The position numbers and the translations under genes are program-made. Source: Guillardia theta CCMP2712 (Eukaryota; Protista; Cryptophyta). Taken from it: 64,000 bases of DNA. The notes under the pieces were generated by a model. The model searched no databases, had not been told where the DNA came from, and saw only the letters and a program-made list of their open reading frames with translations. Shown piece after piece: positions 27,096-34,463 of this stretch (position 1 is its first letter; each line of letters begins with the position of its first letter). The stretch covers positions 449,113 through 513,112 of the forward strand of contig NW_005434641.1 in the NCBI RefSeq assembly GCF_000315625.1, given 5' to 3'.

Positions 27096-27847
27096 CGTGA
27101 CCCCCACAAACCATTAGGTTTTACTCAACTCCGACACGCCTTTTTGAAAAACTCCGAAGCTGGCGTGTAGAATTCTCTTCTGCCTTACAGGCGACGATTG
27201 TCAGCAACGGAAATAGTTGAAGCGCCTTTTATGCGAAAAGATGTAGTTTCAAGGCGTCAAGAAGACTTTCAAAAAGTGGTCCATATCTTGAAAATTTACC
27301 CTGAAATAATGGAGTTCTAGGGTAATTTTCCACCTAGTCTGAAACTTCAGTACCGGTCCATTTGTATGATAGTTGATGGGGTGGAAACTTGAGATCTGAA
27401 AAGGAACGTCGTTTCGAAATGCTGACACGCGAAATGGTCTGTTTTGGAACACAAAGGAGTCCTTAGATGCAGCTACCCTACCCCCCCTGACTATTGAGGA
27501 GATATGATACCTGATTACCCCTTTATTTTCTCTTCCAAGAACCCCTTCAAAGTACCCCACCGTCAGGTCGCCGGCACTGTTCCTGTAAGGGTCCGCCTCC
27601 GTTCTCCCCCCCCCCGTCCTCCTCCCTTCCACAGCCTTTTCTTCCTCCCCTCTGCACCTGCCTGCACTGAATTCGCCTCCTCTCCCCCTCCCACCAACGC
27701 TAGCTTCTCTTACGCCATCCTCATACTCCCTACCTGACAAGTCTCTGTTCCTCCCCTGTGCTCTGCTTGAACCTTTGCATTCGTTTCGCTTACCTGCTCC
27801 CGCTGTTTCCACTGATATCGTTTGTGCACATAAACTCCTTCAAAAGC

Positions 27848-28411
27848 ATGCAGTCCGGTCACTTCTCTAAGACTATGCCGAACCTTCGATCAAATCCCGA
27901 GCCCTTTGCTGGTGATGACCACTATCGGCCGAGCAACGACATATTCGAGGAATGCTGTTGTGGAAACAGTATCTCGCCGTCGTCCACCAGCTCGAAACAA
28001 TCGACTCTGTCCCTATCGCCAACAGCTCACTTCGCACCCTCTGGGATATTTCTGATTGACGAGAAATCAAGGATGAAGGACGCGATGAACGGCGACGTCA
28101 TCATGACCGAGCTGCCTACCTTGATTGAGGAGGAATCCCCGTTGTCAAGCACTCAGAATCAGACTAGTCCGAGGAATTTCTTGTCCACTGCATCGTTCCA
28201 ACGAAGCATGAAGGTGACCGCCAAGGAGTTCAGCAAGATATCAACATGCGCCCCGCCACCAACTAAGTACAGAAGAAGCGCAAAGGACAAGCGGAACAGG
28301 AGCTGCTCTACTTCGAGGAGAGTCTTCAATGCGATGCAAGGTTTCAACATCTCGATGACTCTGTCGAAGCAGAGGAAAGATATGTTCAAGCGAACCACAT
28401 CCATGCCTTAG
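27848..28411 (+). CDS. Hypothetical Ser/basic-rich protein, probably single exon
   Basis: Uninterrupted ORF of about 187 codons downstream of a TACCC block and pyrimidine-rich leader; no recognisable domain. Confidence 0.6.
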   Translation: MQSGHFSKTMPNLRSNPEPFAGDDHYRPSNDIFEECCCGNSISPSSTSSKQSTLSLSPTAHFAPSGIFLIDEKSRMKDAMNGDVIMTELPTLIEEESPLSSTQNQTSPRNFLSTASFQRSMKVTAKEFSKISTCAPPPTKYRRSAKDKRNRSCSTSRRVFNAMQGFNISMTLSKQRKDMFKRTTSMP

Positions 28412-28507
28412 ACGTTTCTGAGCACATTGTTATTATTGCATCTTCATTTTCTCTGCGAGCTTATTTCTATTGTCGTCTGTATGTGAGTCTGTACTTTCAG
28501 TAAATTC

Positions 28508-31500
28508 TCAATGAAGCTCAGAAGGCTCCGCCGCCTCATCTCCTTCCACATAATCCGAAACCTCCGATGAGCTTGCGTCCTCACTCGAGCTGCCATCATA
28601 ACGAGTCATCTTTGATTGCACAAGAGCACAGGACACGCTTGCCTTAGCAACGGCGCTCCTCTCGTCGTTTTCCTGTAAAGACATCGTCATGGTTGGGTTT
28701 GGACAAGGGCTAGGAGCTCTCACCTGTTTATCATAGAGATCTCATCTTCGCTCGCGTCACCTGACTCTTCATCCGCAGAGAATTCCTGGAGGAGGGAAGC
28801 ATCAGTGCTGTGCCGAGCCAGGAGGGTAGTCGAACCATATCTTCAACCGCCTTCATCGTCTCCTTGAGCTCCTCTTGTAACCTGCCGCACAGCATTCACA
28901 TGAATCATACAAGGGCCCAAGCGCTCACCGCTCCTCCACAGCAAATTTGGTGCTTTCTGTGATCCTCGTGTTGCCCGTGTAGAGCCTCATGCGTGGAAAG
29001 CGGAGCAGGAGTCTAAGGAGGAAATATCAGGACACATGACAGCCCTGGCAAACGGCCTGACTTATAAATGTTTTCTTCGCTGGCGTCAGTGATGTCATTT
29101 CTGCTCAGGTACAGCTCTATCATATTGCAGGAGCGGGACATCAAAGTCGTTGTCAAGACTTCCAATCCTGCATCGCTGACCGAGCAGCCTTGCAAGTCCA
29201 GCTTACTGTCACAGGGAGATCAGAAGCAACAGGCTTCAGTGCATCACCAACCTTATTCTGTCGTTGGTTCTCAGCATCTCGCAAAGGACTAGAATTCCTT
29301 CATCTCCAATCTGGCAGCCGTCCAGATCTATCTTAGTGAAGACATTGTTCGTTGCCAGCACTTCGCAGAGGACTTTCACCCCCTCCACTGTGATCATCCC
29401 TAGCTGCCCCGAAATCTTGGCTGACCTGCATGTGAAAACGATCAACATCGCGCCACGAGCTGACTATTCAGCTGACCCGTAGTGGTTGGGGTCCAGATTA
29501 TCCAGGGCTGCCAACTTCTTCTTGAACTTTGCGCCGTTGAGTTTTGCTGGGAAGTTCAATTGTACCATCCCCTTCCCTTGAATGCCCTCACGATCGGATC
29601 CTTTGTAACCTGTGAACCAGGTCCCGTTTGACCCGCAGCTCTTTCGCTTGCTCAGCTTCTCTTCCTCTTTGCTGGCAGAGTCATGTTTCCGGCCTTGTTT
29701 TCCTCTCTTGGTTGATGAGTTATGATTTCCTTTCTTCGACCGGCGGATGAATGCTGCATCGACGTTTTCTTCGCAGTCTCCATCGTTGTAAAGTACACAG
29801 TATTTCCCATTAGCTTGCACACTCTGTATCCTACCTTTGTACCACCGCTTCTGACCTTCATTTGCATGCCATAGAGCCTTGATTTTCTGCCCTACTTTGA
29901 ATGAATTCGGATATATTTCACAGTTTGACTTGGCCAGCATTTTCTGTCGGCGCTGCTCTAGAGTCAGGTCCTCGTCTGAGTCCTGGGGATCTTCAACAAC
30001 TTGCCGTGACTTCACATTTCCTTCAAAATCATCAGACTCGTCATCCTCTGAAAAAACGTTCTTCGATAATCGTTTCCCCTCCCCATGGCCAGAGTTTGCC
30101 ATCTCCTTGTTTGCAGCTGGTGTGAAATGCGACAGGAAGATCACAGGGCAATCATCGCTGCTTTCAGCTGTATCATGTCCTTTCAAATGCTGTCCAGGAG
30201 TAGCATCCTTTGCTTCATCGTCATCGCATGATTGTATTTCCTGAGATTCAAGCCTCGACACTGACCAATCTCTGTTTGACAAGAAAAAGTTATGAGAGGG
30301 TTTGCCGCTCGAATGGCAAAGGTTGACCTGATACATTGTTGCAGCACAGTCTCATCAATCACTTCATTGGAACATTTCCAAGTCTCGCCATCTGACCAAG
30401 TAATCTCTCTACAAGAACCTCCTTTCTTGACAAGTTTCCTGAGCAAATTCGAGCCAATCAGGATATGCGTACATTCCGGAGCAGCCGAGGCATGCACGTT
30501 CGCCCCGCACAGCAGAGTCTGTTTCATGCATCAGCAACTTTATCCCATGTATCTCCCAATCAAACTCTCACAGTCGCTAGAATCAGTTGTAGATCGAACG
30601 AGTCTGTGAATGATTCCTCGGTATGTACACATATGTGGACCTGGGGCAACTTGATCAAAGACATAGCAAGACCTATGAAGCATACTCGCTCCATGCCAGG
30701 CACTCCACTAGCGGCCTTGAGAGGCTTGAAGGAAGCAAAAGACTCGAGGGAATGCGCAAACCGGTCGACAACACAGGTGTGCAGCCATATCCGGGTAGCG
30801 AATTGCTTGCCTTGTTCCCTTGCCTGACAAGAGCGTCACAAGCAGCTCAACTAGAGCTGGGAGATGAGAGATGCGAATGAACCATAGGTAAAGACATACC
30901 CATGATGAGAATATCCCTATCTCCTGGTCCACCTCCTCCTTCCCCGTCTCCCAGTAATCGAAGATCTGCCGAGGTAGGTATCAGCGCGACAGGTCAAAAC
31001 GGTTCATGTCATCACCACGTGAGTGCATTCTTGCACTTCCTTGGCGATCTTGCCACCGCAAGAAAGGTACTCCTGAGTGAAGCAAGCAACTCAAACCTCG
31101 TCGCACTGACCCTCCCCTACCTCAATGTCCCTCTGCGACCCCATGAGCCCGTTGCACTCGGATTCCAGCGGGAGGAGGTACAGGCATGTGCCCCGAGCCC
31201 ATGAAGGGCTCTCCCAACTTTCTTCATCGCTGTTCACGCTCTCCCACCCGCTGCTGCACGACTCTCCTTCCGTGTCGCTCTGACCTTCTCTCACGGCTTG
31301 CAGCTTGTTCCAAGTCTCCCCCTGATCTGAAGGCTCCTCCCTGTTCCGCTTCCTCTTCATCAAGGGTGACTTTCCTCCCCTTCTCCTGTCCGCCGAGGGT
31401 GAACCTAGCTCTATCACCCTCTCCCTGTTGTTGCCACAGAGCGGATGCCGAGACAGAAAATCTTTGATCAGTTTGCTCCCTTCTCCACCAAAATCGTTCT

Positions 31501-31840
31501 CTCTCAGATCCACGTACTCCAAGTCTGGTGAAAGTTCAATCCCCTTCAGGAGCATGGATAGGCTCTTGCTGGTTATCCCGTTCTGACCAAGGTCCAGCCA
31601 TGTCAGACTGTTCTCGCGCATCAGGAGCGTCCGGCACAGATCCTGGCACCCGTCGTCGCCGATACAGCAGCAGCGGAGGTCAAGGGCCTTGTGCCCGCCA
31701 ACCTCTGCCATGGAGAGGTAGACAGCCTGGAGCTGTTCCCTGCTGAAGAAGGATCCTCTCAGATCCATCTTCCTCTCCCCCTTCCCCTTCATCAACTTCT
31801 CCATCGTCTTCCTCCATTCCGCTCCCTCCACCCCCGCCAT
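28508..31840 (-). CDS. Multidomain protein: RNI-type LRR - tandem BRCT - Tudor - RNI-type LRR - acidic tail
   Basis: N-terminal LRRs (LDLRCCCIGDDGC, LTWLDLGQNGI). BRCT1: GGKIAKEVQECTHVI...AREQGKQFATRIWLHTC. BRCT2: GANVHASAAPECTHILI...VIDETVLQQCI. Tudor: FKVGQKIKALW...WYKGRIQSV...YCVLYNDGDCEENV. C-terminal LRRs (IDLDGCQIGDEG, LDLQGCSVSDAG). The junctions I checked splice in frame. Confidence 0.75.
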
Positions 31841-31985
31841 GTGGCGCAAGCGCGGGACGGGATGGGAACCGGGGTAGTGGACGAATTCCAAACGGGGTGG
31901 GTCCTGAGGCTGTTTGAGAAGGGGTACTCAAGATGAAGGATTGTTCAAAAGGGTGGGTAATAACAGATCAAACAAGGGGTACAAG

Positions 31986-32114
31986 AGAGGAAACGGGTGG
32001 GTAATTGTTTCAAAAATCAGGGTAGGGGGTGTTTTGTTTTTTCTTTTACAGAGGAAACGGGTGGGTAATTGTTTCAAAAATCAGGGTAGGGGGTGTTTTG
32101 TTTTTTCTTTTACA
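31986..32114 (+). repeat. Tandem duplication, 64-bp unit x2
   Basis: AGAGGAAACGGGTGGGTAATTGTTTCAAAAATCAGGGTAGGGGGTGTTTTG...TTAC starts at 31986 and again at 32050. Confidence 0.9.
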
Positions 32115-32155
32115 CAGGTTTACTGTTAGAAAAGGGAGTAGCAGGAGCGGCAGGA

Positions 32156-32275
32156 TGAGCAGGAGCAGAAAGAGGGTAAGCAGAATCAGGAGAGGGTGCA
32201 CAGAGTCGACACCTGAGCAGGAGCAGAAAGAGGGTAAGCAGAATCAGGAGAGGGTGCACAGAGTCGACACCTGAG
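32156..32275 (+). repeat. Tandem duplication, 58-bp unit x2
   Basis: TGAGCAGGAGCAGAAAGAGGGTAAGCAGAATCAGGAGAGGGTGCACAGAGTCGACACC starts at 32156 and again at 32214. Confidence 0.9.
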
Positions 32276-32412
32276 ATGTTGCCATGTTGGCCAGACGAAC
32301 AAACGAGAAGGAAAAACGGAAAATGAACATGATTACACAACTTCTATCAGATCAAACTTATCAAACATAGAGGGCTCCGAAAACGATACTGATCACCATT
32401 TTGGAGTGTAGG

Positions 32413-34463
32413 ATGACGGGATCATCGCTGATCAAGTTCACACTCAACTACGAGGTCGTTACCTGCTCTAACTTGGAGCGGGGGCTTCTGATCGAAATGC
32501 TCAGGTGCTCGACGAGTTTGTGAACTCGACGAAAGCGCTTTTCCAGGAGCATGACAAGAGGTAGGAGCGAGTTGCTTCATGCTCGAGCTCTGACGACTTC
32601 GTCTCGTTCAGGATCGCTGTCCTTGAGAAGCAGCAGGTGGGCTCATGGCCTCCCGTACTCGGGCACAGTTTTCATTGATGGCCCGCTGCTTCTAGGTAGC
32701 GCTGACAAGTCAGAACCAAGCTCTGCAGAAGCAGCTCAAGGTGATTCGGCAGCGAGGGGTGCCTACTGCATTGACGGGCGATTATGTAGAACAGGGAGGA
32801 TGAGATAAGAGTTTTGAGAGGGGAATGCAAATCGCTGGCCCAGCAGGTGTACATGAAGCGATCCCTTGCGGTGCCTGTACTGATGGGCATTACTGCCGAG
32901 CAGGTCATCGATATGGAGGTGCAGAATCAAGGACTGAGGGAAGAGAACGCGTTGTCCTTCACCAAGATGTATCAGAAGCTGGAGAGCACATGTAAGACAA
33001 TCATGATGAGAATGATGGAGATGATGATGATGATGATGATGACGATGGAGATGGCGGTGATGGTGGTAGTAGTAGTGTTGGTGGTGATGATGATAGCTAC
33101 TGTGATGCTTTTGTTGCGATTATGACATGACGTTTCTTGCAGCCACATCTGATGGTTTACAGAAAGAGTTTATGATGTTGAAAGAAGAGTCCGACAATCG
33201 TATGCTCATCCTTGAGAACCTTGTAAGGGATTTATTCCTTTGTTCCATTAACACCACCACCAACAACAACACCATCATATCATTCTCCTCCTCCTCCTGC
33301 TCCTTCTCATCATCATCATCATCACCACTTCCACCACCACCACCACCACTACCACCATGCTCCTCCTCCTCCTCCACCACCACCTCATCATCATACTCTC
33401 TTTTCTTCTTCTTCTTCTTCTTCTTCTTCGTCTTGCTCTCCTCCTCCTCCTCCTCCTCCTCCTCCTCCTCCTCCTCCTCCTCCTCCTCTGCCACCATCAT
33501 CTTCATTATACTCTCTTCTTCTTCTTCTTCGTCTTCGTCTTGCTCTCCTCCTCCTCCTCCTCATCATCATCATCATCATCACCATCATCATCATCCTTCA
33601 CTATTCTCTTTCGATGACTCTTGAGCAAGATGCGTGAAATCGGAGGAGACAAGGTGAAGGGCATGATCAACGATATCTCATCTCTCCAGCACGGTGACGT
33701 CAGCACATGCTGCCTGCTGCGATGACGCGACACGGCAGACACTGTCGCGCTGTGGAAGGAGAATGCTCGGATGGTGCTGGAGATGGAACACAGGGCCCAC
33801 CACGATGAGGTAGGAAGGAGAGGAGAGAAAGAGACGGGACGGGACGGGACGGGACGGGAGGAGGGGAGGGGAGAGGAGAAGAAGGGTAAAGGAGAAGAGG
33901 AGAGGAGAGGAGAGAACGTGACGTGACGGGAGGGGAGGGGAGGGGAGGGGAGGGGAGAGGAGAAGAAGGGAGAAGAAGGGTGAAGGAGAAGGGGAGGGGA
34001 AAGATGAGGGGAAAGGAAATGAGATTGAGTGAAGAAAAGGAGCAGGGTAGAAAGAGATGTGGAAGGGAGGGGAGTGAAGGATTGGAGGGGAGAGAAGAGT
34101 CAGGGGAAAAATGTTCTTAAACCTCCCCAGGTGCAAGAAATCCGCAAACAGCTGCGAGAGGTCAAGGTCAGAAGCAATCTTCTTCTCCTCCTCCTCTTCC
34201 TCCTCCTCCTAGCTGTCCTTGGTTCGCTCCAACCTTCCTCCTCGTCCTTCTCTACCTGCCCAGGGGCTTCAACTGACGAGGACGACGACAGAGGGAGGTT
34301 GAGGTCGTGAGGATCAACAGCGGGGAGGAGGCAGAGCAGGAGAGAAGGAAGGAAATATCGGACCTCAAGGTAAGGGAGCAGGCGTCATGGCCCCAACTTG
34401 CTGATCCTCGCTACAGGACTCGTTGTGTAACCTGCTGTCAGAGGCTGAGCTGAGGTCAGGAAG

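Follow-up and report, generated by a model that had tools for sequence, protein, structure and literature searches.

A Guillardia theta gene predicted to encode BRCT-like units and an RDM15-type Tudor domain between two blocks of leucine-rich repeats

The stretch of DNA considered here (the window) comprises 64,000 nucleotides (nt) of the genome of the cryptophyte Guillardia theta CCMP2712 (contig NW_005434641.1, positions 449,113 to 513,112 of the forward strand), and it carries one real, expressed, single gene encoding a protein of 885 residues, in which two blocks of leucine-rich repeats (LRRs) of the ribonuclease inhibitor (RNI) type appear to enclose two BRCT-like units and one Tudor domain. 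All positions given below are those of the window, all features of the gene lie on its minus strand, and the genome searched was the eukaryotic assembly of 87.1 Mb in 669 contigs. The coding region as a whole (28508..31840) consists of 14 exons and about 885 codons, with the stop codon at 28508-28510. Its exons, bounded by the joints of RNA contigs, run from high to low positions at 31840-31121, 31072-31016, 30965-30900, 30823-30686, 30640-30572, 30518-30328 and 30271-29477 (E1-E7), and at 29425-29252, 29205-29062, 29012-28929, 28881-28836, 28785-28724, 28672-28643 and 28589-28508 (E8-E14).

The public RNA and DNA contigs that served as transcript evidence were aligned to window positions 27600-32500, the RNA runs X1 and X2 coming from two separate studies. 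One RNA contig of X1 (2613 nt) descends from 31780 to 28643 and holds exons 1-13 with 11 introns spliced out, and a contig of X2 has the four 3'-most introns removed, two of which are kept in X1. The 13 introns measure 45-76 nt each and, with their joints shifted by at most 6 nt, inside the reported alignment ambiguity, to reach GT..AG or GC..AG, comprise 12 of the former and one of the latter type (28590-28642), the sole non-GT donor among them, which is spliced in X2. Tracking of the exon phases leaves a single frame open, free of in-frame stops, which starts with the ATG at 31840, closes with a stop codon whose last base is 28508 and by arithmetic amounts to 885 codons, and DNA contigs of run X10 are collinear with the genome over the gene region. 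The first-pass annotation had joined the exons at 28508-31840 into one protein from their letters only; the spliced RNA contigs of two studies and the one open frame bear this out at the same coordinates, and every string it had quoted is present, namely the linker FKPLKAASGVPGM, the cage pattern W..WY..Y..Y.DG, the basic patches and the junction of QCIR to DWSVSR, which is correct, its Arg being encoded by the split codon AG/A.

The two ends of the transcript call for separate comment. The 5' end is not fixed by RNA, the X1 contig ending at 31780, and an alternative start is offered by Met13 (MEKLMK, 31787..31804), the residue at whose equivalent the protein of the sister cryptophyte Hanusia phi begins. 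Towards the 3' end, E11-E14 (28511..28881) specify, as judged from the sequence and the RNA contigs, a short segment that resembles a helix and, after it, an acidic tail rich in Ser. X1 retains the introns 28786-28835 and 28882-28928, both of which are removed in X2, and retention of the latter brings a stop codon directly after exon 10 (...AVEER) and thus yields an isoform that lacks the acidic Ser-rich tail. A convergent neighbour on the plus strand (27758-28589 region), represented by a Ser-rich open reading frame (ORF) of 217 codons (27758-28411), displays a much higher RNA depth; an X2 contig runs unbroken from this neighbour into the last exons, and the 3' ends of the two genes overlap or abut.

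The single Tudor domain lies in E7 (29716..29910), where only one match of Tudor size was found. An exhaustive HMMER search with E7 returned 867 proteins at E<=1e-3, all of them aligning through E7 residues ~121-205 and the best of them being arrays in which the domain is repeated up to 35 times; ten of these relatives, with 30-46% identity, were scanned, and all ten exceeded Pfam cut-offs for Tudor families (Tudor_5, PTM_DIR17, Agenet, 53-BP1, Crb2). An AlphaFold2 model built on an alignment of 42 sequences folds into a five-stranded, SH3-like barrel (strands E30-37, 41-52, 58-62, 67-71 and 76-78) with a predicted local distance difference test (pLDDT) score of 89-96 in the barrel. When this model was compared with the PDB by Foldseek, the best 50 matches were all Tudor domains except one flagellar-doublet chain; the best of them was the second Tudor of PHF20 (TM-score 0.88, root-mean-square deviation 1.6) and the one with the highest identity was RDM15 (7de9, 39%). 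The relatives, the modelled barrel and the structural matches together confirm the identity of the aromatic-cage Tudor that had been proposed from the letters. The best PDB match at the level of sequence (phmmer) was likewise Arabidopsis RDM15/PDS5C (7de9). In RDM15, W616, Y623, Y641, D643 and D645 hold the monomethyl-lysine of histone H3 monomethylated at lysine 4 (H3K4me1) and E647 holds H3R2, and the protein acts in RNA-directed DNA methylation, not in repair (PMC8184781); Tudor readers of the RDM15 type are also found fused to plant repair proteins, which they bring to H3K4me1 (bioRxiv 10.1101/2024.10.15.618488). In the phmmer alignment to 7de9, these contacts fall on the W, Y, Y, D, D and E of ALW...RWYKG...VLYNDGDCE, so that six of six are conserved. 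The pocket would accordingly be formed, in the numbering of E7, by the cage residues W134, Y144, Y161, D163 and D165 plus E167 (by arithmetic, approximately W548, Y558, Y575, D577, D579 and E581 of the whole protein), and the domain is best described as a Tudor of RDM15/PDS5C type with the full predicted set of H3K4me1/H3R2 residues.

Both LRR blocks are confirmed, by family profiles and by sequence matches to solved structures, as being of the ribonuclease inhibitor type, in keeping with the first-pass annotation, which had placed RNI-type repeats at both ends of the protein. The N-terminal block (31391..31768), near-invariant in H. phi, holds about 4-5 repeats, whose cores at residues 25, 53, 82 and 110 follow the 28-29-residue RNI period; the C-terminal block (28929..29571) comprises about five repeats contributed by the end of E7 and by E8-E10. 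In exon scans Pfam LRR_6 was matched by E1, E8 and E9 (E 1.1e-9, 3.3e-5 and 8.4e-6), their 38, 24 and 25.9 bits all exceeding the cut-off of 23.4. Searches of PDB sequences matched exon 1 to NLRP2 (E 3.5e-10) and ribonuclease inhibitor (8e-5), and exon 8 to ribonuclease inhibitor (E 4.8e-15) and NLRP3 (1e-13).

Between the N-terminal LRR block and the Tudor, the candidate BRCT region is split over six exons (the tail of E1 and E2-E6) of 19-63 codons, which were scored exon by exon against a BRCT profile made from 16 BRCT domains of the same genome (a 15-sequence version being used with hhalign), with 2000 shuffles per exon as a control. The first BRCT-like unit (30737..31192; GTCLYLLP... / YLSCGGKIAKEVQECTHV / IFDYWETGK... 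/ AREQGKQFATRIWLHTCVVDRFAHSLESF) is contributed by the E1 tail, E2, E3 and E4; the second (30328..30640; VHICVHTEESF...LILAT / TLLCGANVHASAAPECTHILIG...) by E5 and E6; and the linker ASFKPLKAASGVPGMER (30686..30736) stands between them. E2 and E6 both display the GG...TH core at positions 27-47 of the own-genome profile, with scores reached by only 2 of the 2000 shuffles in each case; E2 attains 6.4 bits at positions 27-42, and E6 matches Pfam BRCT with an E of 0.024 over profile positions 31-52. The two BRCT cores, each with P ~0.001 relative to shuffles, are spaced as in a tandem pair. By hhalign, E6 was aligned to columns 28-47 (P 0.0036) and E4 to columns 59-73, the G..V...W..C helix that closes the domain (P 0.007), in the correct order after E2, and the nearest neighbours of E6 in the ESM-Atlas were BRCT families (the first match scored 0.89 and shared 175 features, and the BRCT clan supplied nine of the top ten). 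By contrast with these matches, which support the claim, the E1 tail gave no match to BRCT with hhalign, Pfam found nothing at E<=10 in the E1 tail, E3, E4 or E5, E4 had no usable match in the ESM Atlas, and E6 had none in a PDB sequence search. A BRCT family scan of the own genome misses the locus because introns split the domain, and a genome search for paralogues of E4 and E6 returned the locus itself and nothing else.

Compared by eye with the own-genome BRCT consensus, THVIFDYWETGK agrees with TH.I.......K and AREQGKQFATRIW with A...G...V...W, an insertion of 10 residues separating the two. In BRCTs of the BRCA1 type, two elements of the first BRCT form the phosphoserine pocket: a Ser/Thr-Gly that follows strand 1 and, within helix 2, a Thr-x-Lys. 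The register of THVIFDYWETGK would place T-G-K at the phosphate-binding T-x-K position, at the canonical spacing from the TH motif, and the Gly after strand 1 (C-N-G) is kept in H. phi. Taken together, these sequence comparisons make it quite probable that a tandem BRCT lies in the interval from the N-terminal LRR block to the Tudor.

The remaining segments of the protein bear on where it may reside and on what it may bind. Basic patch 1, DRRRGGKSPLMKRKRNRE (31337..31390), whose RRR and KRKR cores are kept in H. phi, and basic patch 2, RRSKKGNHNSSTKRGKQGRK...KLSKRKS (29638..29745), both resemble nuclear localisation signals, as had been remarked at first sight; they may function as such, and the protein is probably nuclear. 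Just ahead of the first BRCT-like unit lies an acidic Ser/Trp motif, EGESCSSGWESVNSDEESWESPSWA (31196..31270), which contains an S-P-S-W site and is near-invariant relative to H. phi; across the two species it reads EGESCSSGWESVNSD(E/D)(E/D)SWE(S/N)PSWA, and the linker surrounding it varies. We take this site to fit the pS-x-x-aromatic pattern favoured by some BRCT pairs, a speculative idea. Residues 1-120 of E7 (29911..30270) constitute an acidic, low-complexity linker, and E7 outside the Tudor has no family or database match.

How widely is this gene distributed? A word search with exon 1 retrieved one protein, a 275-residue EukProt entry from H. phi with 74% identity, in which the LRR block, the RRR and KRKR patch, the acidic W motif, the start of the first BRCT and most of E2 (15 of 19 residues identical) are near-invariant. 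This entry seems to read through two retained introns, seen as a 16-residue in-frame insert after the equivalent of exon 1 and as a tail behind ...ECTHV; the record is probably truncated and unspliced, and as a consequence of the read-through it supplies no spliced BRCT. Other searches gave no further relative of this kind: a word search with E7 gave no match among proteins of 145-462 residues, the exhaustive E7 search yielded neither a close orthologue of that exon nor a full-length Guillardia model, the LRR and BRCT exons have no counterpart in any of the best 150 of the 867 Tudor relatives, a metagenome scan with the alignment of E1 and Hanusia found no relative, and a degenerate pattern search for CLYLLPLESECNG found no match. 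Neither exon 1 nor exon 7 was met with in any annotated Guillardia protein of two protein databases, so either the gene is unannotated or the proteome lies outside them, and the literature search found no paper joining BRCT, Tudor and LRR in cryptophytes. The first-pass annotation had known of no described protein with this combination and had regarded it as lineage-specific. Both points have held, in that the combination was found in no other protein except the H. phi fragment, the sole relative that shares more than the Tudor.

What might a protein built in this manner do? The reading that we favour, with some reserve, is that of a modular chromatin adaptor whose modules follow the order RNI-LRR, two BRCT-like units, one Tudor and RNI-LRR. 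The basic patches would carry the protein into the nucleus, where the Tudor would dock it on nucleosomes with a lysine mark of low methylation, most likely H3K4me1 or similar; the BRCT pair would bind a partner, possibly a phosphorylated one, and the two LRR arcs would recruit further proteins. In this way a protein complex would be anchored on chromatin that bears the mark, in the service of, for instance, DNA repair or replication. The gene itself looks like a lineage-specific shuffle of promiscuous modules, and it is proposed to have arisen by domain shuffling in the Guillardia/Hanusia lineage. As to the pathway, we infer that a role in DNA damage or repair may be served, because BRCT pairs are typical of damage mediators and because Tudors of this type target plant repair proteins to H3K4me1, these two considerations being the only ones; given that RDM15 acts in RNA-directed DNA methylation, a role in transcription or silencing is equally open.

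Several observations weigh against the adaptor. The tandem BRCT claimed by the first-pass annotation stands as far as the E2 and E6 cores, the E4 alignment and the language-model neighbours of E6 are concerned, but no BRCT exon reaches the Pfam cut-off (E6, the exon cited above, scores 15.3 as against 21.3 bits), and four of the six (E1 tail, E3, E4 and E5) are singly indistinguishable from shuffles. The AlphaFold model of E6 alone, with a pLDDT of 52, is unusable, and by eye no more than part of the phosphoserine pocket can be made out, Asn occupying the Ser/Thr position (Asn-Gly versus Ser/Thr-Gly). The Tudor exon, too, has sub-threshold Pfam scores of its own (17-18 bits for Tudor_5, Agenet and PTM_DIR17, with cut-offs of 27-31), and expression is very low in the sole RNA run available as raw reads. 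Moreover, binding, localisation and damage response are all predicted, and the Tudor and LRR modules of Guillardia shuffle unusually freely, so that a single fusion says little about the pathway.

The alternative that survives best, though it strikes us as clearly less probable than the adaptor with a true BRCT pair, keeps the same architecture and regards its middle as a degenerate BRCT-like or other alpha/beta module devoid of phosphopeptide binding; on this view the Tudor would guide an LRR adaptor that serves the regulation of transcription or chromatin and is unconnected with DNA damage. Its appeal is that the BRCT support consists of two short core motifs only, that the Ser/Thr of the phosphate pocket is seemingly Asn, that the first BRCT carries, by eye, an insertion of ~10 residues before helix 2, and that the nearest Tudor, RDM15, acts in RNA-directed DNA methylation rather than repair (PMC8184781). 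It accounts less readily for the tandem spacing of the two cores (each P ~0.001), the BRCT families that surround E6 in the ESM-Atlas, the canonical distance of T-x-K from the TH motif, and the conservation of the first BRCT from strand 1 to strand 3 in H. phi.

A bolder version of the adaptor, which we hold to be improbable, sees in the protein a cryptophyte-specific mediator resembling 53BP1 and MDC1 in function and differently built, with the Tudor sitting on H3K4me1 of gene bodies, the BRCT pair capturing a damage phospho-epitope, and the LRR arcs delivering factors for repair or ubiquitylation. The phospho-epitope might be, for example, a phosphorylated H2A tail or sites of the protein itself, in S-P-S-W or in the acidic tail, and the LRR arcs might form one horseshoe. 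If true, epigenome-targeted DNA repair would have been invented independently in a lineage that belongs to neither plants nor animals.

More doubtful still is the idea that the LRR blocks are the halves of a single RNI-type horseshoe into a loop of which the BRCT-BRCT-Tudor cassette was inserted, the LRR protein being ancestral and the readers nested later: the two blocks do belong to the same LRR class, have the same PDB neighbours and are short when taken alone (4-5 repeats), but ~400 residues, long disordered linkers included, make a large insert for a loop, and no intact LRR-only paralogue or orthologue was found, albeit no search was aimed at one. Finally, it is scarcely credible that what was read as one protein belongs to at least two adjacent genes or consists of motifs lined up by chance, for even if Logan contigs are assemblies able to join overlapping transcripts, and the X2 contig does continue into the convergent neighbour, exons 1-13 occur on one X1 contig with precise GT-AG splicing, one frame is open through all phases, all exons share a strand with introns of 45-76 nt that leave no space for a second promoter, and the domain matches lie well beyond chance.

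The adaptor reading, if correct, would be of interest beyond this locus. Cryptophytes are almost unstudied in this respect, and the gene provides a concrete candidate, with its conserved pocket of H3K4me1 type, its probable BRCT pair and its two LRR arcs. Should the Tudor bind H3K4me1, this mode of reading would extend beyond the plant lineage; should the BRCT pair be functional, the protein would represent an independently assembled damage mediator.

The DNA upstream of the gene has peculiarities of its own. Two intergenic tandem duplications lie at 31986-32118 and 32156-32275 (64 bp x2.1 at 98% and 58 bp x2.1 at 100%), in a region rich in GGGTA and G-run blocks; in an X10 DNA contig each is present once only (joints 32028>32102 and 32155>32214), a difference that reflects either copy-number polymorphism or collapse in the X10 assembly. 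Further away, a simple-sequence tract (33120-33624) gives rise to long homopolymer-like ORFs on both strands (poly-Glu/Lys/Gly versus poly-Ser/Leu/Pro/His). A scan for bacterial promoters and terminators upstream of the gene was empty, this type of scan being irrelevant to it.

With which known systems, then, can the protein be compared? In terms of the Tudor subfamily, the closest setting is a large family of protist proteins, most of them unnamed, that consist of tandem arrays of the same Tudor type; the copies number up to 35 and the lengths reach 7637 residues, and the named sources include the stramenopiles Phaeothamnion and Aphanomyces. The subfamily consensus reads F.VG..VEA.Y.G...WY.G.I..V..DGTYDI.YDDGD.E. 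Paralogues occur in the same genome as multi-Tudor ORFs on contigs C72, C366 and C87, of which the first (181773-183854) has an open frame of 800 residues with at least three Tudor copies. The arrays of Phaeothamnion, Aphanomyces and the C72 frame belong to the same subfamily as the window Tudor, with 30-46% identity; unlike it, they contain 2-35 copies and have no similarity to the LRR or BRCT exons.

The LRR blocks, for their part, resemble the LRR_6 repeats of ribonuclease inhibitor and NLR-type proteins, such as those at the C-terminus of TONSL, in their 28-29-residue period and in their strong matches to ribonuclease inhibitor, NLRP2 and NLRP3; in contrast to those proteins, the one described here has no NACHT, TPR, ankyrin or UBL match, and its blocks are short and split by reader domains. 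In TONSL/TONSOKU, TPRs (plus ankyrin repeats and a UBL in animals) precede the LRRs. As no exon matches TPR or ankyrin at E<=1 in the Pfam scans, a TONSL-like architecture was rejected: the likeness to TONSL drawn by the first-pass annotation, which concerned the RNI-LRRs, goes no further than this class of repeat.

Proteins that read a histone methyl mark together with a phospho-mark organise DNA-damage signalling in animals and fungi, and a parallel with the Tudors of 53BP1 and Crb2 had been drawn for this gene at the outset. Like 53BP1, Crb2 and Rad9, the window protein combines, as far as its sequence allows one to tell, a Tudor of the methyl-lysine-reading type and a probable BRCT pair in one probably nuclear protein. 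In those mediators, however, a tandem Tudor lies N-terminal to the BRCT pair, whereas the window protein carries one Tudor only, on the C-terminal side of its BRCT-like units; in comparison with 53BP1, no UDR was seen in the protein and LRR blocks are added. The similarity to the first Tudor of 53BP1 is weak at the level of sequence (PDB E 0.4-0.8). The equivalents of its cage residues W1495, Y1502, F1519 (Tyr here) and D1521 are present, and the position of its fifth cage residue, Tyr1523, is occupied by Asp. With a single Tudor, the reversed order and a different type of cage, membership of the 53BP1/Crb2/Rad9 family was rejected, and the Tudor parallel gives way to RDM15/PDS5C as the nearest solved relative.

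In plants, RDM15-type Tudors take cohesin and mismatch-repair factors to genes marked by H3K4me1. Compared with RDM15/PDS5C, and with plant MSH6, which bears the same type of Tudor, the remainder of the window protein is unrelated, in that it contains neither a PDS5/HEAT nor a MutS part, and its Tudor has a 3-residue insertion after the cage Trp. What they have in common is the YxDGDxE motif, all of the H3K4me1/H3R2 contacts as predicted by alignment, and the presence of a single Tudor on a larger chromatin or repair protein.

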